This document shows, piece after piece, positions 34,291 to 60,400 of a stretch of 64,000 nucleotides of DNA (within the stretch, counting starts at the first letter, position 1; each line of letters begins with the position of its first letter). The stretch covers positions 7,300,889 to 7,364,888 of the forward strand of contig OZ037772.1 in assembly GCA_964035545.1 (NCBI GenBank). The letters run 5' to 3'. The position numbers and the translations under genes were made by a program. The notes beneath the pieces were generated by a model, which was given only the letters and a program-made list of their open reading frames with translations, was not told the DNA's origin and did not search any database. This DNA is from Bugula neritina (lineage: Eukaryota > Animalia > Bryozoa).

Positions 34291-37200
34291 TCAGAAAGCT
34301 GACTGAGAACTAGGCTTAAATATGTCAATGAAGATCTGTCGACTGTTTCTATCAACAGTATAACATAAGTTAGCATATTGTGTAAATCTGGACGTATCTC
34401 TCATTATTCCAGCTACATCTGTGAGTAAATCAAGTAGGTTTACTCTCATTACCGGCTTTTCTTTTCTGCTAGAAGACATAGAATTGCTGCTGTCTGATAA
34501 CACAGAATCATCTGTTGACATCTGTATGTCTGTTTGTTCTGTGATGTCATCAGAGGAGCTGGTAGCAGGTGTCAATAGTTTACTTCTGTAATCACTGGTC
34601 AGATCTCTCAGATGTTCTGACAGACACTTGAACATCAGTCCAGGCTTTGACCTGGTATAAAATGTAGAACATAAAAGTAATACGGAAATTTTGATTTTGT
34701 AATATTTTTGCATAGCCTATTCCATAATATTGAATTTTTTTTGGCTTGGGAAATACACCAATTATTACACTTGTAAAAACAGAGATAAAATTGGAAATAG
34801 GGCACCTTATAAAAACGTCAAAAATACACATCAAATAACTTTAATTTTAATTAAACTAGTGTATTTGTAACGTAAAACACCATTACAATGTAGCGCAGCC
34901 TTTTGACCAAGATTATGAAATTCTTTTTCCATACTTGCTGTCTGGTAGAGTAGAGAACATAATATAGCAGTCTACAGGAACTTCTAATGGTGGGAAAGCT
35001 GGTTGTCTGCTCCACTCCTGCCTTCTCAAAGTTTCATCCAAACCCCTCCTTACAGGTTGATACATAATTGTCACTTCATTCTCTGGCCATGGGAAATTAG
35101 AACTGGACTCAAAGCTGTGTGGAATTCTGTTGTACTGAGGGGGAATACCTCCTCGGCAAGCAGACAGAAATAGGAGCTACAAACAATAACCACATTATAC
35201 ATGTATTTCAATGTCTGAAGAACGCATGTATTTGTATATTCATGCAAACAAAGCAAACATACTATTTATATTTGTTGAACTATCAATATAACTATCTGTT
35301 TACTAACTGTTTTCAATTTTGGTCGGATAATTCCATTTCTGATTAATATTGTCAAATATTCTTAAATTAGATAGAAATCACAAGCTAAAAAGGCTGCATG
35401 TGTAAAAAATTACTTGACTAATCAAACCTTAGGAATATTCTGTACATTCCCTGTGTTGAATGAATCAACTACTTCCTGTACAGAACATAGTGATTGGTTA
35501 TCAGCTCCCATTATGTTTCTCTGATATCCATGAGAGAGGATAGTCAAAGCAGCCATTGAACCATGTCCTTCTGATCTGGAGAACTCAGATATAGAACTAA
35601 GCATTTCTTCTGCAGAGAGATCATACTTGACTTCTACCTGGTTTAGAGAAAGGTCAAGAGATTGAATCAACAAAAAAGAAAAATGATATTTGTTCTGTTC
35701 AGCATATCCTGTGCTGGTAAGTCATGAATTATTGAAACCATATTAATCAACACACTCCATGCATGAGAGTAGGAAATCATATTTGCAAAAATATACATTT
35801 AATAGTTTGGTAAAACCTATTATAACGATCCTTGGCGGTATGGAAAAGTTAACAGAGACAGATTGAAAATAGTAACTCCTCATTATAGAAGTCCGAAAAA
35901 ATTGGAATCATTTTGTTTGACTAAAAGTGTTTCTAGGAATCGGTTATGAATTTAACATTTGGGTAAATAACAAGCTCACTTATAAGCCTATTATCTTAGA
36001 TGTGCTTATCTGGTAGAATTGCAATCAAAAACATATTTATTACAAATCCCTACAGAATATATTTTTTTATTTTAATAAAGCTTACTTCAAAGCCAAAATA
36101 CTTTTTAAACACTTCAATACTCTTCTGGAGAGTGACTCTTCGAAACTTCAAGGGCTGATGTTCATACTGATTGCATAGAATCAGAGCTTTTCCTCTCCTC
36201 TCACAACATAGAGCCAGGTTGTTTTTGAGCTTCATTTCTTTAGGATCTGATTGATTCACTTCAGCATAAGAATTTCTTCTCATTTCACCGTTGTCAAATC
36301 TACTAGGTACACCATTATCTGGTCTACTCACTTCACTGTCTTCTGTCAGATACCAACCATCATCTCTGATGTATCTCTTGCTCAGAGTTGAGTTTACACC
36401 AACTTTCTGTACATCAGGATCACAGGTGAACACAGTGATCAGAGAATGTATAGACCCATGTTTCTCCATGTCCAGCATTGACTTTCTGAGCAAGACATTA
36501 AAATTTTGCATTAAAAGTAGAACATGTAATTTAATGTAGTAAAATATAGATCAATTTAAAAGTTAATTATATGTTTTTAGTGTTACCTTGCATATTCATC
36601 TGCATAGTACTTCACTGAAAGTATCAGGTAGTCAGGACCTGGTGGTATCAGATTTAGATCTGCTTCTTTCACAGAACTTCGTATCACTGCTATCTGTAAA
36701 CAGAACTCATGCATAACTTTGCACAACATAAAAACCTGATACACAGACAATACTATATAATTTATTTTTATACACAATTTCTCACTTAACAGCCTTAGAT
36801 ATTTTCCCTCAACTCCCAAAAAAAAAACAAACCTGAAGATAAATTACTTATTTGCTTTTTATTTTAATATAACTGTAGTCCAGCTGTAACTCAAACACAA
36901 AACAAAACAGAACATATAAAAAAACTTTTCCTGTGAAACAGTGACAAAGAAATGTACGCCACCTTGGGTTTACCACTATATATGGGTGAATCTACATCAT
37001 TGAGTTTTTCTTGTATAACCTCTTGCTTCAATTCTAAGGATTCTTCTAGACTACTCGCGTCAATGAAAATAATTTCACTGTCTTCTTCAACTTTCGACTA
37101 CAAACCGAAATAATCTGTAAATTATAATGGCGCCGAATGAACTGCATACACTTCATAGTAAATACCACTACAATTTTATATTTTTACATTCAGTTATACA

Positions 37201-40200
37201 TTCGAAAACAGTTTCTAGATTTGAAATAAAGTACTAAGTAATAAACCATATAATCACACAAATCGACATCCATAAATGAACTTACAAAAAGATGGCTTGA
37301 TGTAGGAAGATGTAAAGATTCTTTCTCATGGAGAGTTGGGGTGAACAAAGAGTGGGATAGCTTGAAAGCAGAGTCAAGCAAAGAGTATTCATTTAAACAA
37401 TACTTTAGTACTTTTAAAATTGTCTCATCATATCTATAATACTTTGAGTGCAATAAAGAAAATCCATTTGAAGAATATCGCAGCATGTCGAAACTTTCTG
37501 ATGATAATGAGACGTGTTTTGGAAAGGGATTAGTGTGATCAGCCAATCTGTATAGAAGAGTACTTGCAGATGTGTCGCACAGGACTTTTTGAATGTAGAA
37601 CTTCTCATCAAAATTTCTTCTGTGAATAATTGATAGGCAGTCGGTTAACTGTGTGTTGTTTACATTGATGATGTGTTGTCTCATTGGCAGGGGTAAATGC
37701 AGCATGAAGTCAGCAAACACTCGGGTGTTATACTTAGCAGCAACATAATGAATAGGTGTGTTACCATATACATCAGCATGCATCATATTTTCGATATTTG
37801 ATATGTAAAATGAGTATTCCTGAAGTACACTATACAGGTCCCCCAGAAAAGGTGACAGAGCTGCAAGGTGCCAAATGTTTTGGTGGCTGTTGTTTCGTTT
37901 TTGCAAAAGGGCAGCCATTGTATCTGAGCCACAATTCTGCTCAACACAGTTTAATAACATGTTTAGAGCACCGCTGTTTCCAAGGGAAATTATCGAAAGA
38001 ACTGGTGTGTGACCAAAGAGATCTTCATATGCTAGTAAATGCTCTAATGTATGGCTATTGAAAGATTTCATGATTATTTCAACAGATTCTTTATCATTAG
38101 CAAGATGCAATGCAGTTCGCCCATTGGCATCAACTGCAGCCAATAATCTAGTTGATCGGTAATTGGACAAATATTCTACTACAGACACCCGACGGAATGA
38201 AACAGCCATATGCAATGAAGTACGCATATTTTTGTTAGCAGCCAACAAAAAATTTTCCTGCTCAATCCTTGGAAAGGACTCAACGAGAGTCTCGGCTATC
38301 TTTCCAGTTTTAGCAAGATGTAATGCTGTGCACCCCTCAACATCTCTTTGTAGTATGAATCCATCAAACATTGAGCTGAAACTGCAGAGATATTCTACTA
38401 CATCTGTTAGACCACTGCCGGCAGCCAGATGCAAAGCTGTACGCTGATCATCATCAACAGATAGTATAAAATCTCTTCGTTTTTCAGGTGCAACTGATTC
38501 TACAAGTAGCTGAGCAATTTCCTTAGTTTTAGCAATGTGAAGAGCTGTCCAACCATCACTATCAGATCTTAGCAGTAGTTGGTCACTAGCTGAATGGCAA
38601 AGCAGTTTCACCACATCCATTCTTGAAGAAAGAGCTGCTAAATGTAAAGCTGTGCATTGATGTTCATCGGCAAGCACAATGAGATCATGCCTTTTACATG
38701 GCGAAAGTGACTCGATTAATAATTTTGCAATGTCTCTGTTTTCAGCATAGTGAAGAGCTGTTCTACCAAAGCAGTCCTCCTTTGTTAATAAACTATCGAG
38801 ATCAATATTTAGGCTGCTGAAGTACTTAATTACGTCAATTTTACCTGAAATTGCAGCAGTATGTAAAGCTGTGAACTCATTTTCATCAGTAAGAAGCACA
38901 AAAGATTCTTGTTTCTCAGGTGGGAGGCTTTTCACAATAAGTTCTGCTATCATTCTGCTTTGTGCAAGATGGAGAGCAGTTCTACCTTCATTATCCACTT
39001 TTAGTATCAACTCATCACTACTTGGATACACACTACAGAGGTATTCTACTACACCAATCCTGTTTCCTTTAGCAGCTGTATGTAGTGCTGTACACTGGCT
39101 CTCAGTAACAGAAAATATCAAACTTCTCCTTTCAGTCGGTGTAACTGACTCCACAAGTAGTTTGGCTATTTCTTTATTTCCTGCATAATGTAGGGCTGTG
39201 CTACTATTGCTATCTTTCTTTAGTATCAGTTCATCATCAGCTAGAGACAAACTACAGAGATATTCTACTACATCAGCTCTACCATTTTCTGCAGCTAAAT
39301 GCAATGCTGTACATTGATCGTTATCAACAGATAATATAAGATCTCTTTGTATTTCTGGTCTCACCGAGTTAACAAGTAATTTAGTTATCACTTTCTTTTC
39401 AGCACAGTGCAAAACTGTTCTACCATGACTATCTTTTTTCAGAAGAAGCTGACCGTCATTTGAATATAGACTGCAGAGATATTGTACTACATCAGTTCTA
39501 CCTAACAGAACCATTACATGCATAGCTGTACGCTGACTCTTATCAACAAACAACAAGAATTCTATCAGACGTTCAGGAGTAACAGACTCAACAAGGATTT
39601 TTGCAATTTGTTCATTATGAACGCAGTATAGAGGTGTCCAGCCACCACTGTCTGATTTCAGAATCAACTCTTCACTGCCTTCAGATAGATTGCATAAGTA
39701 TTCCACCACATCCACTCTATTTTTATGTGCAGCTCTATGCAATGCTGTGCGTTGCTTTTTATCAACCGACAATGCCAAGTATTTCTGGCTTTCAGGTCTT
39801 ACTGACTCTATCAGTAGTTTTGCTATATCTTTGTTTTTAGCATAATGTAAAGCTGTATCACCATCTCTATCTTTTTTCAGTAGCAAATCACCATCAGACA
39901 AGCTACAGAGATATTCTACTACATCTGTTCTACCACTTTCAGCAGCTGCATGTAATGCTGTGCAGTGATTCCTATCAACAGATAATATAAAAGCTTTCTG
40001 GTTCTCTGGTAGAACTGTTTCTAAAAGTAGCTTGGCAACTTCTCTATTTTCAGCATAGTGTAAGGGTGTCCAACCTTTAGCATCTTTCTTTAAAATCAGT
40101 TCATCATCTGTTATAGACAAGCTACAGAGATATTTTACTACATCTGTTCTACCATTGGCAGCAGCTATATGTAACGCTGTGAGCTTATCTTTGGTAACTA

Positions 40201-43637: not shown

Positions 43638-46600
43638 ATGGATAAAAATCTTGGTGGAACACCTCTACACTATGCTGAAAATAGAGATAGAGCAAAACTA
43701 CTCGTAGAGTCAGTTACAGCAGAAAAACAGAGAGAATTTATACTATCTGTAGATAAGTATCAGTGTACAGCACTACATAGGGCTGTCGTTAACAATAGAA
43801 TTGATGTAGTAAAATATTTCTGTAGTTTATATCCAACTTCTGATGAACTAATACCAAAGAAAGGTAAAAATGGTTGGACTGCTCTTCACTATGCCAACAA
43901 TGTAGAGATTGCAAAGTTACTTGTGGAGTCGTTGGCACCAGAGAATCAAAAGCAGTTTATATTATCTGTTGATGATAGTGAGCAGACAGCACTGCACGTT
44001 GCCATCTCTGTTGGTGAGGCTGATGTGATCAAATATTTGTGTGAGGTACGCCAAAATAATGATGAGCTGCTATTCAAAAAAGACAGTTTTGGTTACACTC
44101 CTCTTCATATAGCTAAAGCCGATACAATAGCGGAGACACTTTTACAGTCAGTTACGCCAGAATTGAGAAAGAAATTTCTGTTCTCTGTAAGTAATAATCA
44201 ATGCACAGCATTGCATGAAGCAGCCATCTTTGGTAGAACCAAGGTTGTCAAATATTTGTGTAGTTTACCTCTAACTGATGATGAGTTTATAATGAAAAGA
44301 GAAGAGGAAGGCAAAACAGCTTTGCACTTGGCAAAAAACAGAGAAATTGCGCAACTGCTTGTTGAGTCAGTTTCAACAAAGAAACGAAACAGCTTAGTTT
44401 TATCCGTTGATGAAGAGGGCATGACTGCATTGCATGCGGCATCTGTACTAGGAGCAGCTGATGTAATAGAATATCTTTGTGGTATATCTTTAGAAAACGA
44501 TCAGTTACTGTTGAAAAAAACATTTACTGGCTGCACGGCTTTACATGTTGCATATGATGAAACTGCTATCACCAGTCTTCTCCATTCAAGCAACCATAAT
44601 TGTATAAAAAGGTTACTGTTGGACAGAGATGATGAAGGTAACACGCCACTTCTCTCATTAGTCAGATTTGGCAAAGACGACGCCCTGAAATCGCTTCTTC
44701 AGCATATAGAGCAAAGTTATGGTTTAGGCACTTTGGTTTCCTCTTTACATAGGCGGAACAAAAAGAAGCAAAATATTTTGCACCTTGCGGCTTTGTCACC
44801 AACCTTGAGAGAATTGTATAGTGTACTGGAAGAGTATTTACCAGACATAAATATTAAAAATATGATGTACCCAGATGTATACGGTAACACACCAATTCAC
44901 TATATCGCTGCCAAGTATGACACCAGAGCCTGTGCAGACTTTATGCAGTATGTTCCCTTATCAATGAGACACATTATTGTAAATTCAACAAACAAACAGC
45001 AAACCAACTGTAGAAACATTGTTCAACGGAAAGCATTTGACGAAAAGTTTTACATCCAGGGAGTGCTTTGTGATGATTCTGAAAAATCTTTACTGTCCAA
45101 ATTTTCCAATGTTCGGCAGTTCTTTTTTAATGAGTTCCAGCAACAGCTGGACCTGATTGTGCCTGAAAATGCCTATAAATATAATGAAGTGTTTTTCAAA
45201 GTGGTCAAATATTCTTTAAATGAATATTCATTGCTAGACTCTGCTTATACAACGTCACACACATTGTTTTCTTCAGCTGCTGATGCACAAAAATCCCTTT
45301 TGCTTTTTTTGTCAACAAATACGCAACCTGAAAACATCGTAAGTGGGCTCATGCTGGCTATGTAATTGACTGTATCAGCATAATAAATTGCAATTTTACT
45401 TTGTTTGCTTCAACAATTGTGAGAAAAACTTTAGCTGTCAGTAAAAGCAGATTGTGTTGGTGCTGCAGCAGTTTTATTAATGACCAGAAGTGCAAGCTAT
45501 CAATTTGATTAAAATTGTCAAAACTTTTAAATTTAGTTTCTATCTTTGTAATAATCTATGATGATGAGAGGTTTATCTGCATTCTAGACTTGTTTGATTG
45601 TAGGGCAAATGAAATTTTAATTCTATCCATTGTCTGATATTAACAATTAGGACCTTTTTTAAATTAGAACCTATATTATGACCTTGAGTATCGTTTAAAA
45701 CAATAGTATTCTTTTAGCAGAAGTCAGCAGAAGACTATCTACTTATAGCCATAGACATGGAAGACGTGGAAAAACCTAAACAAGAAACTGTGCAACAAAC
45801 ACTCAATGAAATGGACTTGGCTACATTCAACAGCAAACCCAAGGTCTTATTCTTATATCTATACTACCTATATACCTGTCAGCTGTATCATTGCATGAAA
45901 TCCCAATGTGTCGAAGGTAAACGATAGTTGATTCAGTCCTAAGTCACTATAGCTATGTATATATTGTGGTAGAAATACGTACATTGTGGAGTTGTCTTTT
46001 CTTATGTTTTTATTGTGTGGAATTACCTTCTGCTAATCTCATTTTTTACAACTTATGAAACACAATCATGTAATTCCATCCTGTCCGAAAGTCGGATTGC
46101 TGATTATCGGGCTACTGATAATCGAACCAAGTTCCAATTATCAGACTTTCGATTATCGGAGAGCCGATATTCGGGCCCCCCCCCGACTTTCGGACAGAAT
46201 GAGAACAAAGGATTCTTTGTCTACTTTTATTTTGTTTTGTAAACCATTTCTCTATCTTATTTCAGTATAAAAGCATGCGAGCTCACAGTGTAGATTCAGT
46301 CTATTATACTGGAGCTCTCCTGATACAGACTACCTATTAAATAATCTACTACACAATAAAGATTGATACTCTTGGCGATTACAACACCTGTTGTTATTTT
46401 CATATTAGAGTTATGTTTCACACTTAATTACATTCAACCCAAAAGTTAAAACATTGGTAGGGGACCTATTGAGGGTTTAGAAGAACAAGATGGCCAAAGG
46501 GGAGGAAGAGGACCAGCCCCAGAAGAGCCAGCAGGACCAGGCCATGAAGAGCCAGCAGGACCAGTCCCTGAAGTGCCGGCGGGACCAGCCCTTACGTTGG

Positions 46601-49600
46601 AAGCTCTGGTGACAGCCCTCCGAGAAGTCCAAGAGGCTAAAGATGTGCCACCTGGTGACAGGTACCGCTTCAAGCCCCCAAATTTCAGAGGGGACAGCGA
46701 TGTGGAGCAGCTTATCTGCGAGTTTGAGGATGTGGCCACCATCACTGAATAGCCAGCACCGGTGCGCGTCCTCCAACTCTGGGCTTGTTTAACAGGCCAG
46801 GCCAGGAGCTTTGCTCTCGAGCCTGATAAAGCCTACATAATGCGGGCTCTCCAAACTCGTTTGGGGTTGACAGCCCAAGAAGCCGTGGACAAGCTACAAG
46901 GGCTCCGAAGGGATTGGAGGACAACCCTAGAAGACCATGCAAACTCGATTGAGAGGCTGGCCCAGACTGCTTTCAGTCAGGCTGAAGAAGAGAAGAGACG
47001 CCTGTTATATAATGCATTCTTTCGAGCCATTAATAACCCAGAACTACAACGCTACTGGTTGGCGGCCAAGGTAAGTAGCATTGAGGAGGCCTTGGAGATA
47101 GGCAAGGCCTATTTTCAGGTTGATGGGCCCCATGGATCGGACTTTATCGCCCACGAGGTGGCCGAAGAGGAAAAGGAGACCACCACACTCCCTATCCTGC
47201 AGGTGGCGGCAGCAGCTACAAAGTCGCCAGAGCAAACGCAGCTCACCACATTGATGAACATGGTGAAAGGCCCGCAGGTTACGGTGACTGAGCTGCAACG
47301 TGACCAGGCCAACAGGCGGGCTTCCCAATCGTGGGACGACCCTGTATGCCCCTCACAACCCACCTGCTTGGGAATGTGGTCCGTCAAAACATATGAGAAA
47401 GCTTTGTCCCAGGGGAGGATGGCTGCCTTTAAACTACCGAGGCTCACGGTAACTTCCGCCAACCGTAGGCCCCAAGCCAAACCCATCCGGGAGAAGGATC
47501 AGAAGACAATCAGGAAGGCCTTTATGGAGTCTGCTGATACTGAGTGGCAGGAACATCAGAGACCTCGGAGACCGCAAGGTCTACCCGATTCTCCAGCTCG
47601 ACCACTTAGTACCCGGTTGGAGTCTCAGGGCGCAGGATGGCAGGCACCTCGGAGATCTCGGAGACCGCAAGGTCTACCCGAATTGGCTAGACTGTCGGAA
47701 AGAGCTTCTCGCGCAGTGTATCAACCCCTTCACGGAACCCGTCCGATTATCAGCTGGAATGCTTGCGGGGAAGTACCACTTCATCCAGGAAGCGGATGTG
47801 GGGCTGGTACTGAAGACAGTGGCTGACACTCAGGGAAAACCCCCTCCTGCCAGTTGAGGAGCAGTCTCAGCGCACTTGGCTGACCTGTATGAAGGAGCGT
47901 GTAGCAACTGAACGCCAAGTACTGGCTCAACTACTCATGGAGTACAGTGATGTTTTCAGTCACGGCGATGGAGACATGGGGCTGACTAAGGTTGTCTCCC
48001 ACGCGATATCCCTAGCAGCCAGTACCACCCCCATCAGGCAGCCAACCCGACCTCTAGGGCAGGAGAAGGAGGTGAGCCGACAGGTACAGGATCTTTTCGA
48101 CCAGGACCTGATTGAGCATGCCCATGGTGGGTGGAGCTCGCCAGTAGTTCTGGTCAAGAAAAAGGATGGTAGCTGGAGGTTCTGTGTGGACTACTGCAGA
48201 CTCAACAGTGTTACCATCCAGGATGCCTACCCTCTGCCATCCGGGCTTACTTTTGCCCAGGCAACTTTCCAGCGGCTCATGGAGCAGGTCATCAGTGGAT
48301 TACACTGGAAGACCCTCCTAAACTATCTGGACGACGTCATTGTTGACTCATGTCAGTCATCTGCGAGCAGTCTTTAACCATCTCCGAGAAGCTCGACTAA
48401 ATTTGAAGCTCTCCATGTGTGCACTCCTGCAGCCAGAAGTCACGTATCTAGGCCATGGGATTGGCGGTGACGGGGTCGCTACCGACCCAGAGAAGGAGCA
48501 AGCTGTGAAGGAATAGACTGTTCCCCGCAACCTCCCTGAGTTGCGGGCATTCCTGGGCCTGGTAGGGTACTACCAGCAGTACATACCTGGGTTTGCAGGG
48601 GTGGCTCAGCCCTTGAATCGACTAACCTCCAAGGGGGTCCGGTGGCAGTGGACACAGGAGGACCAGCAGGCATTCGACCACCTCAAACAACGACTAATGG
48701 AGGCGCCATTTTGGCGTATCCTGATCCAGCCAAATAGTAGATCCTTGACACCAACACTTTGCTAATGTATTCTGCCTGTGTGGCAAATACTCACACCAAC
48801 GCAATTGTGAGTTGCGTCACTAGCGCATAGCGCGTTGCCACACGGGCAGCACATTTGTGGACAACGAGGCCACATTTTCGGGGTTCCGGGATCTCATCTT
48901 GCCACACGTTGGTGACACTCGTAAACGAGCCTCTCTCACTCTGGGTTTCCCAGCCTCTTCGGGTCATGCTGACACGGGTCAGTGGGAATTCCAACTCCAA
49001 TGCTCACGACCTGGATCGCCAACCCGCAGCAACGAGCAAGAAGAAGAAGACGGAGCGCCGTTCCACCACCACCACCACCCGGATCTCTCAGCCCACTCAA
49101 GAGCCCCTGCCATCAATGGAAGAGGAGGTGTGATGCCTGCGCCGGCAGATGCGGAGATATGAGGAGGATATGACGGCCCTACGGAGGCGGCTTAGCCACC
49201 TTGAGCATTCCAATGGCGGCCGACGTCACTGATGACAATTCCATTTCTTATGTATATGTGGTAGTGGGTGTGTGGTGTTTTCACATTTTTTTTCTGTGCG
49301 TGCAATTTATTTTACGTGTGTAGTTATTATTTTGTGTGTATTCCTACAGTTTTTTTTGGTTAGCTTCCCCTTTAGTTTTTTTGTGTGTTTAATGTATCGG
49401 AAAGTAGGCTTTCCGATAGGGGGTGTGTGTGGCAGAAATAGGTACATTGTGGAGTTGTCTTTTCTTATTTTTTTACCGTGTGAAATTACCTTTTTCTGAT
49501 CTCATTTTTTATAACTTATGTAACACAATCGTGTAATTTCATCTTGTCTGAAAGTCGAACGACTGATTATCGGGCTCCCGATAATCGAACCAAGTTCCGA

Positions 49601-52600
49601 TTATTGGAGAGCCACTATTTGGGCCCTCGACTTTTGGACAGAATAAAAATAAAAGATTCTTTGTCTACTTTTCTTTTGTTCTGTAAAAAATTTCTTTAAC
49701 CTATTTCGGTATAATAGCAAGTGAACTCACAGTGTAGATTTAGTCTACTACTGGAGCTCGCCTGATACAGACTACCTATTAAAGCATCCACTACACAATT
49801 AATATTGATAATCTTGGCGACTACAACACTTCTAGTTTTTCTCATACTAGAGTTATGTTCCACACTTAATTACATTCGACTCACAAGTTACTACAATATT
49901 TTATGCTTTGTTTAATGTAAAACTTCTAGATTTTTAAAATAACTCATAAAAATAACATTGAAGAGCAATTATCACGGTTGAGTTAGCAGTTGCATAAAAA
50001 TCAAGGTGTATTAGAATATTGCTAGGACATTTTTAAAACAATCGTAATTTATTTACTCTAGAAACTGAATAAATCTTAAAAAATTAATTATACTTGGCTA
50101 ACGTTATTTACCAAGACATTTATAATAGAAGAGGTATAAATACTTAATTGCAGTTTACTCATCTTATTAGAGAACTGGCAATGTGTTTTTACAAATTGCA
50201 TAAAATTACAATTCAGAGTGCCCAATCACATATAAAAACTCATGCAAGTTTATAGTCACCATCCCTGTGGGAACCCTAGATGAAAAAGGTAATTCTTGTT
50301 AAATCGGGCTTATAAAGATGAAGCACAGGAGCAATTGAGACTAGATGTGTTTCCTAACATCACTGATAGCTTTTTGTTGGGCTCAAACCCATGACTTCGT
50401 GTTTACTAGGCAAACACTCTAATCCCTAGACGACAACTGCTCCCTAGTGCCCAATCACATATAGCGACTTCAAAAAACAATACAAAAAATTAATAATGTA
50501 TTTTTTACCATGCCAATTAACAACTTGACACTTTTCAATTAAAAAGCGAAAATATTGTGTCATTTTTTACGCATAATTGTCATAATTTGTATTTACCAAT
50601 TATATATGTAAAACAGCTACTTGCAGGCAAGTTTTTATATAGAAATCAACTTTTTTCATTTGTATGTACAGCTTACAGTGACACTGAGATAGTACATAAA
50701 ATCTCTAAAAATTGTCCCACTGTTTAATTAAACTGGTGATTAAATTTTGCAGATAGCAGTGATACAGAGTTCTGTGAAAGAAGAGAATCTGAATTTACTA
50801 CCACCAGGTCCGGACTATCTGATACTTCTGATAAAACATGAAATTGATAATGACATTAAAAGGAGGTAAATTAAAGCAAAATGTATTTTGCATAACACCT
50901 TATTTTCAACTTTTTTTATCAGGTAGAATTATTGCTATATTATTATTTCTGTTGAAAGTCAATATTTAATGACATGTTAAATTATTTATGAAAAATAGTT
51001 ATTATCTACAGAACAACATTACCCGACATGAAAAGATGCAAATCATTTCATTCTCTGATCTCTGAGCTTACCTGTGATCCTGATGTACAGAAAGTGAGTG
51101 TAAACTCAACTCTGAACAAGAGATACATCAGAGATGATGATGGATTTCTGGTAGAAGATGGTGAAGAGAGAGGAACAGAAGATAGTGAAGAGAGAGAAAC
51201 AGAAGATGGTAAAGAAAGAGAAACAGATGATGGTAAAGAAAGAGAAACAGAAGATGGTGAAGAGAGAGAATCACAAGATGGTAAAGAGAGAGAAACAAAT
51301 AATGGACAAGAGAGAGAAGCAGATGATGGTAAAGAGAGAGAAACAGTTGATGATGAAGAGAGAGGAACAGATGGTGGTAAAGAGAGAGAAACAGAAGATG
51401 GTGAAAAGAGTAAACCACCTACTAATACATCAGAAAACTTCCTTCTTATTACCGGAGGCATCAGAGGCAAAGCTCTTATTATTTGCAACAATCTAACACT
51501 CTCGACTAAAGCAACTGAGCATGATAAGAAAATTTCTCAAAAGCGGATGAGAACTTTACCAATTGCCCAAAACATTCTAGCCAAGTACTTCGGACTTAGT
51601 GTAAGTATGGTTACCTTTATTGTTACATAGATCAGGTTGCATATGATTGCACACATGCACTAAAAATGAGGAAATTTTTTACTTTTCATCCAATTTCAAA
51701 GAGCATATATTGACTTGCTTATAAATGAAGGTAGTTAAAAATTTGTTGATATGCTTTTCATTGGTTCATTTTAAAGAAAAGCTAAAGCATAAATTTACCA
51801 CATATGGTTCCAGGCACCACATACATTAAAGAATCTGTCTAAGATTTTAGAAAGCTTTTCAGATACTGACTTGTAGGTGAAGCCAATGAAGCTTTCATTG
51901 CTAGGTATTTTATTAGCTTATTTAAAAAGTTCTCACTTTTATTATTGTGAAAAAATGAAACTGGTATTTGATCAACAGATCATTTCGTCTAATGTTATCT
52001 ATATATTCAAAAATAAAGCTGAAATTTGCATCATACCAATACCAATGAAAGGAAATTTTGCCAGCAACTTCTTTGCACTTTTTAATTAAATTAATTAAAA
52101 ATCCATAGATTGTCAAAGAGTGAATTTTTCTCATCCGAGGATCAGACAAAATTTCAAACTTGCAGTCAGAAATTATATTTTCCAGGTAGAAACAAAATGT
52201 GACATGTCTGCTGAGGAAATACTCAGTTCTGTATCAGAATTCTCAAGATCAAAAGGACATGGTTCAATGGCTGCTCTAGTTATCTTCTCTCATGGTAAAG
52301 ATGGACTGATTTATGGACATGATGGAAAGTCAAACTTCTCAGTACAGGAAGTGGTGGATAACTTCAACTCTGGACATGTTAGAGATATTCCGAAAGTAAG
52401 TTTAATTGCAGAGTTTCATTTGTTTAGTCTTAAAAAACATTTATTGAAGTAAAAATATAAAGATGATTGGTCTCATCTACCAAGTTGACTTGAAAACTTA
52501 TGATAGTCTGCCGAGATTTAAAAAAGCATCCAAAATATGTTTAGGTAATGTTCCTGTCCTGCTGCAGAGGAGATATTTCAGCCATATACAACAGGGCTCC

Positions 52601-54468: not shown

Positions 54469-57400
54469 TTATAATTTCCATTGAACTTTAGCCACGCATG
54501 GTAAGATATCAATGAAAATCTGCTTACTGTATCTATTCACTGAGTAGCATAAGTTAAAGTATTGTTTAGATTCAAATTTCTCTCTCATTACTCCAGCTAC
54601 ATCTGTTAGCAGATCAACTAGTTCTACTCTCTGTACAGATGGCTGAAGAACAGGAAATGCTACAGAGACATCTGGTGGTAGTTGCTGACTTGGGAGAGAG
54701 TCTTTAGACGTGGGACATCTTTCAACCTCTGGGACTGTTTGGAGCTGAGAGGCTTTACTGTTGGTGAGTTCAGAGAGATGTTCAGAAAAGTACTTGAAAA
54801 ACATTCCAGCTTTTGATCTAAAAATAAATGAAAACTACAGTAAGTAATTTGATACAAAATATATTTTTAAAATTTTGCAGACTTAAAGAACATAAGTAAA
54901 ATGTGCCAGGAAAGTATGATTGCAATCCAAATACATTGCTAGTTTAATTTTTGAAGCAAAAATACTGTGAAAATCATACCTTTTACATCTAGACCAAAAA
55001 CTTTAAGATGTAAAAGCATTTGCTGTACCCACATTTACCTGCTGTCTGGAAGAGTTGTAAAGCAGACGTAGCAGTCTACAGGAATATCAAGAGGAGGAAT
55101 TTGCTTTGTAGCTTGTCTTTCCCATTCTATAGTTTTGACTGCAAGAGGCAGTTCCTGTCTCACTGGTCTATACAGGAAAGGGATGTCTGGAAACTCATCG
55201 CTAGATTCAAAACTATGAGGAGCTCTGTTGTATATGGCTGAAATATCTCCTCTGCAGCAGGACAGGAATAGTAGCTGAAATCAGAATCTTTCGGCCTAAT
55301 ATTACAGCAACTTGAAAACAAAGTTACTACTAATCAACTATTTAATCAATTTGAAATATTAAAAAAAATTAAAATAAAGTAATTAACCAAACATGAGTTC
55401 GACAGTTTTGAATGCTTCTGGAACTTCTTTGGCATGTCTCAAGTTAAAGTTGCTCTGTATGACCAATAAACAAATTTTAAGTTCAATTGACAGAAATACA
55501 CCTAAATTTATTGCTAGAATTTTTCAACGTTGAAATCGAAGTGGAGAGAAGCTTTCTACTACCTTGGGGATACATGCAGTAGTCCCAGAGTTGAAGTGAT
55601 TCACCACTTCCTGTACTGAACAGTTTGATTTTCCATCATGTCCATAAATGAGTCCATCTTTACCATGAGAGAAGATAGCTAAAGCAGCCATTGAACCATG
55701 TCCTTCTGATTTGGAGAACTCAGATATGGAACTGAGCATTTTTTCTGCAGATAGATCTTGTTTTTCAATAGTCTGTAATATATATAATATATTGGACTAG
55801 CCCTGTGCTATTATCTAAGTTATAACTAGGTTTTGCATCCACTCATGAATAAAGTTGTTGGGTGATTTGTGTTTAACTCTAATGCCCAATTGAAGCATTT
55901 CCATTATAGAATATTTGTTTTGAATAATTTATTAGTGTAGCAAACGACTTTTCTATGCATTACCTGTTTTGGTGTCTTATAACAAGTCATGCATATACTA
56001 ACGAATTTACTATAAGACAATATAGGAAATGATCTAATGTAAGCATTTTGCAAGTTGGCTGCTTTTTATTCAATAACACAGCAAAGAATTAGCTCATATG
56101 TTCATTTGGATTTTGCAAACACAAAACCTTTCCAAGCATTTGAAATATTTTCTTCAACCTAGACTTGGCAAACACTAGCTATAAAACAGAGTCAAAATCC
56201 TTTAATTACCATAAGGTTTTGAGCACATAGAAAAAATAGTTGCATATACTTACCTGAAATCCAAAGTGGTGAGCAAAAACCTTTCTGGAATGTTTCAAAG
56301 ATTGAGTGCGTCTCCCAGAAATTGTTTTACTTCCACTTGTTGGGTTATTAGAGAGTTGTATGTTGTTGCAAAGGATCAACGCCTTTCCTCTGTTACTTTC
56401 ATTTATGAGAATACGGCAATTTGGTGTACCAGTGGTGGCGGAATCATCCATCTTACCATCAACATGGCTATTTACTTCGAAATCAGAGAATTGACTTGTT
56501 TCACCAACACATGGCTGACTCCATTTGCTAGCCCCAGATTGAGTTACTGACTCATTATCTGATATCATCTCCTCACAATTATTTGCACTATGAGGAGGTC
56601 CTTCATTTACGAAAAAGCTTTGCACATCTGGATTATTAGTGAGCTCAGAAGTCAGTTGTTTAACTGATTTGTATTGTCCCATGTTGATCATTCTTTTTCT
56701 GTATATACAATATTGAATAACAACCATCATTAGCTCTTGCCACAAAATTAGTGCACACAAAATGTTTCGTTTTGAAATGGATTTAAAAGATAATAATAAT
56801 AATACTTCACCTTTTATAATCTTCATTCTTGTACTTGATTGAAACTTTGACATAATCTGAGCTTGAAAGTGCAGAACTTGAACTTTGCTCCATTAAGCAG
56901 CTCTGTAAGTTTGTGTAAATACATGTTTATTAGACACTTTGTGTAAATTGGATGTATTTACTTGTTTAATGTAGCATAGTTGCTTATAAAATTTCCATTG
57001 TATCTACATCATTTGATCCACTCACTTTTTCCTCGTTCAGTTTATTCTCTTCCCCATCTGTTTCTCTCTCTTCAACATCATCTGTTTCTCTCATTTTACC
57101 ATTTTCTGTTTCTCTCTCTTCACCATCACCTGTTTCTCTTATTTGAGTGTTACCTGGTTCAATATTTTCATAACCTTCTACCAAAGACGTATCATTATCT
57201 CTGATGTATCTCTTGCTCAGAGTTGAGTTTACACTAACTTTCTGTACATCAGGATCACAGCTCAGCTCAGAGATCAAAGAATGAATAGATTTGTGTTTCA
57301 GTAAGTCTGGTGCTGCATTCCTATGCAAAATAGTTAAAAAATTTATTTTAATATAATATAACATGTATAATGCAATGTAGCAAAACGTAGAAATTTTTTT

Positions 57401-60400
57401 CTATTTTAGTGTTACCTTGTATAGTTGTCTTTTTTGTATTTCACTGAGAGTATCAGGTAGTCAGGACCTGGTGGTATCAGATTCAGATCTGCTTCTTTCA
57501 CAGAACTTTGTATTACTGCTATCTTAAAAAACAGAGGCAAATGAAATATTACGTTTTCCATATATTTCTAGACTATTTGGCCATTTCATATAGTACAAAG
57601 TTCATTCTCAATAAATTAAAATACAACTATCAAGCAAAATAACGATGTATATAAATATAATTTAAATTTTAATATGTCAATAAAAGACATGAATTTGTTT
57701 TAAAAGCCATACTAAGGCAGTAAGCTATTTGTTGTTAGGTTTATTTGGCACATTCAATTAGCAATACTGAAATACTATTATAGTTGATACTATAATATAT
57801 ACATGTAGTTGATTAAAGACACTTTAATTTATACTATAAGTACCTTAGGCTTTCCATCGTGCACAGATATGTTCATTTCATTGAGTACACTCTGTATGGT
57901 TTTCTGCTTAGGTTCTTCCACATTGATTGTGTCTATGACTATAAGCTGCAAGTCTTCAGCTGAACCCTGAAACCAAACTAGTTTAGTACACAACATGATT
58001 ATCAGACTATATAGCTAAACGATTTTGTGATTATCAACACCAGATGTCACATTTGATATTAAATATCAATTTTAATAATTTGTTGAATGCTTTTTGAAAT
58101 GAACGATGTAATTTGCACAATAAGGGCATCAAAACTGTCGCTTTTACTAAAAATCAGTCAATATCCCCTCGGAAACTTTCTGACAGTTTTTACCTCCAGA
58201 TGGAGCAGGGCTAAATATGAGCACCACATATATGATGTTTGACTTTTCTAAAACTACACTTCCCAATGCTCATATCATAACTATATGTTTAACAACCAAT
58301 GCAAACGCAATTTTCTGGTGCTTCAACAATACAGAAAGCCTTAATTGTAAAAATATAGAAACGTTATTCAGGATGGTTAATCTAGCTACCCAAACAGAAA
58401 AAAGCAAAAATAGGTGAGAAAAGGTAACAAATTTGGAATAGTCATTGTAAGGTATAATTAGAAAATTATGTCATAAACGTGATAATATACACATGTTAGT
58501 TTATAACAGAGAATGCTTTTTATTATGTACCTAAAAGTATAGGCTTGAGTGCGGCACCTGAAGAATTAAATACCCTGTATAACTAGATAAGTTGGTTATA
58601 GCAAGGTGTATTGATGTTTTTTGAAATACATGTGTGTAGTAAATACATTAGGTAATGAGAAGCATTGGAGCACAAAGGTAATTAATATCAACTGCTTTCC
58701 TTCATTATATATAACAAGGAAAATTTAACCTATATACGCAACTACTAAAGAGTTTATTATTATACACATCAAGATACTTTAGGTGAGGGCATTACATAAT
58801 TAGCATCAACTACATAATTAGCTCTAACTATCATTGCTTATATAAAGACTCTATGGCAATAAGAAATATATTATATACACACTCTTCAACAAGAAGTCAG
58901 TGTATAAATTTGAACTAAATTAGAGATAATAAGCGTTTATACTAATGCAGATAGAATACTTCTGTGAGGAAGGAAATTAAGTCATATTGCAATAAATACT
59001 TCATACCCTTCAAATCGACCAAATGATACTTTTAGCTGCATAAAATGTGCATAATCATATAATCAGTTGAGAAAAACATTTTGCATTACATTTACTTGTA
59101 CCATGGCAGTATCGTGGCTATGTAAATATATGCTTTAAATGGCTAGCTATAGGGATATCTGATAAGAGAACATATAACATAATTATTATCTACAATAACT
59201 GATTATAACTACTAACTAGAGATATAAGATATAAAAAAACATATAATATGAGTAAGATTTAACAGATCAACTCACTGTGTTCTCTTGTCCAGATTTCTGT
59301 TGGCATACAGCTGCTAAAGACAAGCTGTGCGACGTTGTGTATGCAGAGTCAAGTAAGGAATATTCATTCAGACAGTATTTCAGCACCTTGAGAATTGTCT
59401 CATCATATTTATAGAAACTCTTTGGATGTGTCAACTGCTGCTCGAAGTCTGTTCTGAGAATGTATTCAGCTGCAAACTTTGTAGCCAAGGAACTATGCTT
59501 GTCATCTGCTAATACCTTTTTAATGTAAAACAATTCAGAAAAGTTTTTCTGGTGAATTATTTTTCTGCAGTCAACTAGTTGTGAATTATGTGAATCTGTA
59601 ATTTTTTGTCTCATTGTTAAGGAAAGATGGAGCATGAAGTCAGCAAAGACCTTAGTGTCATACTTAGCAGCAACATAATGGATTGGGGTGTTACCATACA
59701 CATCAGGGTACATCATTTTCTCAAGCTTTAAACATCCGACATAGTCTTGCAGTGCATTATATATACTGTCTAAAAACAATGACAGAGCTGCAAGATGCAA
59801 AATATTTTGACCAGCATAGTTGTGTTGCTCTAGATAAGTTATTATATCCAAGTCAGTTTTATTTTCAATATGTTGAAGAAGTTCTGCTAGTGATTCATGT
59901 TGTCCAAATTCAACAAGTGACAGAATAGGAGTGCTACCTTTGGTATTGGTGACAAAAAGCAGTTCATCTATTTGTGCAGATTTTAGTTCACTCAGCATGC
60001 AACTGACAATCTTTTTGTTGGTAGCATAGTGCAGTGCTGTGTGGTTAAAGCAATCTAGCCAAAACGTAAGAGAAACAGATAACTGAGACAAGCCACAGAG
60101 ATATTCTGCTACATCTGTTCTACCACTTATAGTAGCTGTATGTAGTGCGGTATGCTGATTCTCATCAGCACACAATATAAAAGTTTTGTGATTCTCTGGT
60201 AAAACTGACTCTACAAGTAACTTTGCAATTTCTCTATTCTCAGCATAGTGTAGAGCTGTCCTACCATCAGCATATTTCTTTAGTATCAGTTCATCATCAG
60301 CTAGAGACAAGCTACAGAAATATTCTACTACATCTGTTCTATCACATAAAGCAGCTGTATGTAGTGCTGTACACTGAGTCTCATCAGCACACAATATAAA

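Follow-up and report, generated by a model that had tools for sequence, protein, structure and literature searches.

Regulation of active enzymes by catalytically dead relatives has been met with repeatedly, as illustrated by c-FLIP(L) with caspase-8 and by the inactive half of separase. In vertebrates, the pseudo-caspase c-FLIP(L) (CFLAR) partners caspase-8 as a separate protein having a full six-stranded domain and death effector domain (DED) recruitment domains. In separase and the CHAT proteases (TPR-CHAT/Csx29), a dead copy is located N-terminal to an active clan CD protease in one polypeptide, behind a helical-repeat region, and the same order of parts is found in the genes described here. 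Our analysis of a 64,000-nucleotide stretch of the genome of the bryozoan Bugula neritina (GenBank assembly GCA_964035545.1, contig OZ037772.1, positions 7,300,889 to 7,364,888 of the forward strand; hereafter "the window"), which is AT-rich eukaryotic DNA and has its best named protein matches in Bugula neritina, reveals three genes, A, B, and C, of an ankyrin-caspase family with at least 16 members in Bugula, in which a conserved, catalytically dead segment of ~120 amino acids (aa) is positioned between the ankyrin repeats and the caspase. We interpret this segment, with a probability of about 0.7, as a truncated dead caspase domain corresponding to strands 3 to 6 of the caspase fold and the accompanying helices (in order, strand 3, helix 3, strand 4, strand 5, a helix, and strand 6); its predicted structure, its strand-4 motif, and its intron pattern suggest caspase ancestry.

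The Bugula domain differs from c-FLIP(L) in having four strands and 120 aa, in being located on the same chain as the protease and behind ankyrin repeats, and in that its pairing with the protease is only proposed. Separase and the CHAT proteases belong to distant clan CD families (C50 and CHAT), and their halves pack directly, without a long linker; in Bugula, in contrast, the two halves each belong to the animal caspase (C14A) type, the dead one being truncated, and an acidic linker of 40-110 residues lies between them. We know of no description of an animal caspase bearing a dead caspase remnant on its own chain, and a search of the literature for tandem or double caspase domains, ankyrin caspases, and Bugula caspases found nothing relevant. 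Caenorhabditis elegans CSP-3 is a partial caspase homologue without an active site that has been reported as an inhibitor of CED-3, although one study could not reproduce the anti-apoptotic phenotype (PMC3591282). CSP-3 resembles the Bugula domain in being a truncated caspase paralogue without an active site, but it is free-standing, whereas the Bugula domain is fused in cis and retains strands 3 and 4 plus part of the small subunit. New in Bugula relative to the literature searched, next to the known cases of c-FLIP(L), CSP-3, separase, and CHAT, is a shrunken caspase remnant located in cis behind an ankyrin array and fixed in an expanded, lineage-specific family.

In gene A, the dead domain proper spans positions 36359-37097 on the minus strand and is encoded by two complete exons and part of a third. 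Specifically, exon 2 (36963-37097) encodes a first strand, IIFID, in the place of the caspase His strand, followed by a helix and by GKPK, directly after which comes a phase-0 intron; exon 3 (36587-36693) encodes a second strand, IAVIRSS, a loop, LNLIPPGP, and a third strand, DYLILSV, and ends at a phase-2 intron; and the 5′ part of exon 4 (36359-36485) encodes a helix, SIHSLITVF, and the last strand, VQKVGVNSTLSKRYI, with which the domain ends. These assignments rest on our splice model and on AlphaFold2 (AF2) predictions, joined for exons 2 and 3 by hhalign comparisons (for exon 2, with helix 3/strand 4 of canonical caspases). The corresponding exons of gene B are on the plus strand (exon 2, LLIAID to NSKPK, 45718-45843; exon 3, starting IAVIQSSVK, 50753-50865; 5′ part of exon 4, helix and terminal strand, 51012-51138), and those of gene C are on the minus strand (exon 2, LIVID to DGKPK, 57844-57966; exon 3, starting IAVIQSSVK, 57416-57522; 5′ part of exon 4, helix and terminal strand, 57194-57320). 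A preliminary description of the window, made from the sequence alone, had quoted several of these strings and had proposed that the GKPK-IAVI(Q/R)SS strand has lost the catalytic Cys; translations and splice models place the quoted strings where that description had located them in all three genes, with Ser in the Cys column of each. Across the 16 paralogues, the Cys column holds S, Y, F, L, or V, and C in one copy, and none of the 16 has a His after the first strand, a loss of the His-Cys dyad that is as expected for a dead domain.

We predicted the structure of the segment with AF2 from an alignment of residues 95-368 of the NCBI protein model P0005 with the exon translations of all paralogues. 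In this context, the dead segment is predicted with a per-residue confidence (predicted local distance difference test, pLDDT) of 82-95 as strand, helix, strand, strand, short helix, helix, and strand, and the exon 2 strand and helix of gene A have a pLDDT of 78-92. The domain predicted alone (mean pLDDT 77.5; predicted template modelling score 0.73) has unchanged elements (VFIAID, helix, KIAVIQNS, DYLILLVK, helix, and VQKVSVNS). The predicted sheet contains four strands, as compared to six in the caspase/hemoglobinase fold of clan CD (order 2-1-3-4-5-6, the last antiparallel). In particular, strand 1, helix 1, strand 2, helix 2, the His-Cys dyad, and the long active-site loops are missing, the inter-subunit loop is cut to ~14 residues, and what remains corresponds to the C-terminal two thirds of a caspase fold. 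The preliminary description had proposed a hidden, c-FLIP-like dead caspase domain; a folded, conserved, catalytically dead, and caspase-like domain is indeed predicted, but with four strands and not as a full c-FLIP-like domain. The boundaries first proposed, 36380-37620, have to be moved, as 37286-37620 is predicted to be helical or disordered and to lie outside the fold. That region belongs to the post-ankyrin tail at the end of exon 1 (37286-37735, minus strand), which is conserved in the family and which is likewise outside the caspase-like fold.

Structural comparisons, a check that the preliminary description had itself suggested (AlphaFold plus Foldseek), lean towards caspases. Foldseek searches of the Protein Data Bank (PDB) with both AF2 models returned caspases and c-FLIP(L) exclusively among the top 50 matches, at 14-22% identity; the best matches were procaspase-8 (6px9_B, E 0.011 and 0.015) and c-FLIP(L) (3h13, E 0.031 and 0.021), with none below E 0.001. 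A shape search of the ESM Atlas with the AF2 model placed a c-FLIP cluster first (template modelling (TM) score 0.58, 118 residues aligned), with the following rows at ~0.4, and the Atlas's own model of the dead segment matched caspase-7/8 at TM 0.68-0.69. An ESM Atlas feature search gave caspase clusters at 0.90, a value reached by 4-10% of shuffled proteins in a method not calibrated on protein parts, and we use it as a lead only.

In sequence, the segment most clearly resembles the canonical caspases that this genome encodes. We compared a profile of the 16 dead segments with 23 canonical caspase exons (..SHG..GKPKxVIxQxCxG) using hhalign, which aligned 30 columns, covering helix 3 and strand 4, at a score of 32.7 (P 2.1e-5, probability 77%); 200 column shuffles all stayed below this score (mean 11.6, maximum 24.7), as did the reversed profile, at 13.1. 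The alignment matches the strand-4 motif GKPK(I/V)AV(I/V)Q of the dead segment with GKPKxVIxQxC of the canonical caspases. At strand 4, the dead domain is nearer to canonical caspases than is its active neighbour, which has itself diverged to (D/N)IPKLLFLSCCRG. A small-subunit profile is best matched locally by the STLxK of the final strand, which lies at the collinear end; this match is marginal, its score being reached by 8 of 200 shuffles.

The intron pattern of the dead domain mirrors that of the active domain. The phases of the introns following exons 1-6 of gene A are 0, 0, 2, 0, 0, and 2. In the active domain of the ankyrin-caspases, (I)PK is followed directly by a phase-0 intron, and a phase-2 intron comes a few residues past strand 5; in the dead domain, the phase-0 intron follows KPK, and the phase-2 intron lies nine residues past the third strand, three further than in the active domain. 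The correspondence that the preliminary description had drawn between these introns is borne out by the splice models and across the 16 paralogues, with the qualification that the phase-2 introns, which sit after ..EYA-R and ..LPDS-K, are offset by 3 residues relative to the strand-starting Asp. Canonical caspases of this genome have a different arrangement: all 23 exons read through QACxG, a phase-1 intron follows just after QACxG in 5 of the 5 exons whose donor was examined, and in three small-subunit exons a phase-1 intron lies ahead of GYxSWR. Since phases 0/0/2 are common to the dead and active domains, unlike the canonical caspases sampled, a duplication within the ankyrin-caspase lineage is plausible.

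The most likely origin of the dead-domain exons is a partial internal duplication. Under this scenario, exons 5, 6, and the 5′ part of exon 7 of an ancestral ankyrin-caspase gene would have given rise to exons 2, 3, and the 5′ part of exon 4; the copies would then have shrunk (from 70 to 45, from 80 to 35, and from ~110 to 42 residues), and purifying selection would have maintained them in the 16 or more genes of a family restricted to Bugula. Copying from a sister paralogue would leave identical traces, so that internal duplication, read from exon sequences, is a plausible but not a unique account. In another ankyrin-linked caspase of the genome, L083 (G000:C9:8253500-8256500, minus strand), the large subunit and the ankyrin repeats share one open frame; the frame ends at EGKPK, the next letters read as a putative GT donor, at the intron place of the family studied here, and no dead-domain exons were seen in L083.

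The dead segment is expressed, is spliced as modelled, and is under purifying selection. In the genome to which the window belongs, 15 genes (A, B, C, and 12 others) were found to have the three-exon dead-domain unit, and a profile search added a divergent 16th paralogue (G000:C1:1.012-1.017 Mb). Across the 16, tblastn matches and splice sites are at homologous positions with equal phases, and none has a stop codon in its dead-domain exons. Mean identity across paralogues is 52% for the dead segment and 58% for the caspase exons, and the median ratio of nonsynonymous to synonymous substitution rates (dN/dS) is 0.32 for the dead segment and 0.28 for the active domain; the blocks GKPK(I/V)AV, PPGPDY, and (V/I)NSTL are near-invariant. 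RNA-type contigs from four runs fall on exons only and contain the joints between exons 3 and 4, 4 and 5, 5 and 6, and 6 and 7; one loose contig end joins ..NGKPK to IAV, which is the exon 2-exon 3 joint of a close paralogue, and one contig joint in gene A (36586/36484) agrees with the splice model to within 1 nt.

Three observations concern exon usage and exchange in these genes. One contig of RNA-Seq run X12 joins 36358 to 35637 (GT..AG) in gene A, skipping the linker and strand 1/helix 1; the skip causes a frameshift that ends the protein 5 residues later, leaving ankyrin repeats and dead domain only, and the joint rests weakly on evidence, its shorter side being just 22 letters. The NCBI model P0005 has an equivalent skip, in-frame, in its own gene. 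Synonymous divergence (dS) differs between dead-domain and caspase exons for pairs among genes A, B, and C and loci L031-L042, being, for example, 0.64 versus 1.24 for A-C and 0.77 versus 0.35 for B-C, a discordance that suggests gene conversion or exon exchange among clustered paralogues.

A probable role of the dead domain is regulation of the active protease with which it shares a chain. The dimer interface of caspases is made up of the last strand and the helix next to it, and occupation of this interface is what switches initiator caspases. The last strand of the dead domain (VNSTLxK) is its most invariant stretch and, with STLxK, comes closer to the canonical form than the last strand of the active domain does; because the dead domain keeps this invariant caspase strand, we infer that it may dock on the dimer interface. 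Specifically, the dead domain would dock on the dimer face of the active protease, in cis or on a neighbouring chain, and docking would set whether the protease stays monomeric or becomes active. Docking within one chain would correspond to the intramolecular pseudo-caspase/caspase dimer, gated by the ankyrins, that the preliminary description had put forward. The dead domain could be an inhibitory cap, relieved by cleavage of the tether or by ligand binding to the ankyrins, or else an activating partner. The ankyrin repeats would bind ligands or act as a scaffold, and the acidic linker would be a flexible, possibly cleavable, tether. This linker (36212-36358, minus strand, in gene A, from translations) is Asp/Glu-rich and differs in length among paralogues; in gene B (51140-51470, plus strand), and likewise in P0018, P0020, and several paralogues, it contains a long DGEERET(D/E)-type acidic repeat array with a gene-dependent copy number.

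Extended to the whole family, the proposal would be that these proteins are single-chain caspases in which the dimer interface is filled by a built-in half-caspase, in which an intramolecular switch (ankyrin ligand or linker cut) replaces dimerisation, and which have expanded in a bryozoan as a sensor-executioner family of innate immunity or allorecognition; we regard this extension as speculative and, as a whole, rather doubtful. If the remnant docks on the protease, the family would offer a natural single-chain model for control of caspase activity by dimer-interface occupancy, and strands 3-6 would be a minimal piece of the fold sufficient for that regulatory role. The family combines long ankyrin arrays with expansion in tandem clusters, as is characteristic of immune or self/non-self systems of colonial animals.

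Several results weigh against the interpretation of the segment as a truncated caspase that docks on its neighbour. Searches with hmmscan of P0005:100-365 and P0009:1-275 gave no Pfam PF00656 match in the dead segment at E values up to 10 (curated cut-off 21.4 bits), and the Peptidase_C14 match of both proteins is confined to the C-terminal domain; the caspase similarity claimed in the preliminary description is significant against canonical caspases of the same genome but does not extend to a Peptidase_C14 Pfam match. When 1.84 billion representatives were searched exhaustively with a HMMER profile, the 28 matches were all exon-sized fragments of this gene family, with no caspase among them, and a profile search of PDB sequences with the dead segment gave no match at E 10. 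The four named proteins found for the ankyrin-caspase family, two of which are among the 28 HMMER matches, are all from Bugula neritina, and the rest of the 28 are from JGI/Logan samples; a word-indexed protein search with the dead segment returned just the segment itself and one fragment. The comparison with the downstream caspase of the same gene is not above chance. BLASTP and hhalign always choose the alignment that had been proposed beforehand, at helix 3/strand 4 (..GKPK-IAVIQ with ..IPK-LLFLSCC, E 0.03-0.08), but 6.5% of column shuffles attain the hhalign score of 17.8, and the reversed profile exceeds it (23.2); we accordingly rejected likeness to the adjacent active domain as evidence of kinship, shuffled and reversed profiles scoring equally well. 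The significant sequence signal thus rests largely on one motif, GKPK with strand 4, and the structures are predictions from a shallow paralogue alignment. Complex prediction counts neither for nor against the docking step: three ESMFold2 runs on P0005:235-368 with P0041:125-438, performed without paralogue alignments and with the partner poorly folded in at least one run, gave 0.00, 0.64, and 0.00. Libraries of hidden Markov models (HMMs) miss shrunken domains, which intron phase and structure prediction can recover.

The main alternative to a caspase remnant is an unrelated small three-layer α/β domain of the flavodoxin, DegV N-terminal, or EIIA-mannose type, its caspase likeness being due to a common strand-helix-strand arrangement and a chance GKPK. 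The DegV/FakB N-terminal domain and the EIIA-mannose fold, from bacterial lipid- and sugar-handling proteins, do match in shape, but leave the last strand uncovered and have no common motif with the segment; matches of the flavodoxin/DegV/EIIA type cover 87-93 residues, end before the last strand, and have 4-11% identity, whereas the caspase matches cover 110-125 residues at 14-22% identity. On the models, this likeness appears to reflect a common arrangement and not kinship. A generic α/β fold is also at odds with the exclusive presence of caspases at the head of the Foldseek results for two separate models, with c-FLIP standing alone at the head of the Atlas shape search, with a GKPK/strand-4 profile match above all 200 shuffles, and with an intron after PK and a phase pattern that mirror the adjacent caspase, and we consider this explanation unlikely.

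A larger domain is less probable still. The exon-1 tail (37286-37620), being directly upstream and conserved in the family, might be thought to contribute the two missing strand-helix units (strands 1 and 2, helices 1 and 2) of a complete pseudo-caspase; however, AF2 predicts helices only for the tail (pLDDT 29-81, of low confidence) followed by ~60 disordered residues, with no strands, no Pfam match was found in it, and no fold match spans it, the caspase alignments starting just before the His strand, which makes a complete pseudo-caspase very improbable. The loss of the catalytic residues and of half of the fold might instead indicate a decaying relic or a flexible linker without a function of its own. 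Conservation, intact frames, and spliced transcripts indicate that the dead segment is neither; 16 intact frames, a dN/dS of 0.32, near-invariant motifs, and pLDDT values of up to 95 leave the relic or linker reading with hardly any credibility, and the truncated dead caspase domain is the reading that we retain.

The remainder of gene A encodes the ankyrin repeats and the caspase. As rebuilt here, the whole of gene A (40504-34291, minus strand) has seven exons separated by canonical GT-AG introns and a product of 1557 aa. Exon 1 (40504-37286), of 3.2 kb, encodes the ankyrin repeats (splice model). Exon 4 is composite (36485-36086), comprising the end of the dead domain, the linker, and the start of the active caspase; its 3′ part (36086-36211) encodes strand 1 (RGKALILCN) and helix 1 (splice model; the Pfam Peptidase_C14 match starts here in the homologue P0009). 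Exon 5 (35428-35637) encodes strand 2, helix 2, strand 3 with ILSHG, and helix 3, and ends at IPK with a phase-0 intron; exon 6 (34935-35176) encodes strand 4 with SACRG, the inter-subunit loop, and strand 5, and ends at a phase-2 intron; and exon 7 (34291-34651) encodes the remainder of the small subunit and the stop codon. All are on the minus strand and are based on the splice model and RNA contigs, with Pfam evidence in addition for exons 5 and 6; exons 5-7 all belong to the Pfam-recognised caspase with ILSHG and SACRG.

In gene B, the intron between dead-domain exons 2 and 3 (45844-50752, ~4.9 kb) holds a retroelement at 46000-49500 (plus strand), which is GC-rich (47-51%) and has gag-like and reverse-transcriptase-like open frames split over several frames. 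Gene C has a second, degenerate copy of the exon-4 start (SVKQLTSELTNNPDVQSFFVNEGPP) in another frame at ~56250-56700 (minus strand), upstream of the RGKALILCN part; the first exon-4 copy runs into a stop, so an extra intron or a local duplication must exist there.

The caspase repertoire of the genome as a whole (G000) is very large, with at least 179 exon-level PF00656 matches, many of them in tandem clusters on C1, C6, and C7. Two long caspase-like frames, L047 (G000:C4:5000994-5001812, minus strand) and L079 (G000:C5:12533558-12534592, plus strand), have full-length PF00656 matches and have lost the nucleophile (GKPKFIFFDASFG and GKPKFVFFDVDS, respectively); L047 is one open frame without stops, and both may be free-standing pseudo-caspases of the Bugula genome. 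Three reference proteins of the ankyrin-caspase family are each missing a part: P0005 is without strand 1/helix 1, P0009 is without the small subunit, and P0041 is without exon 2.

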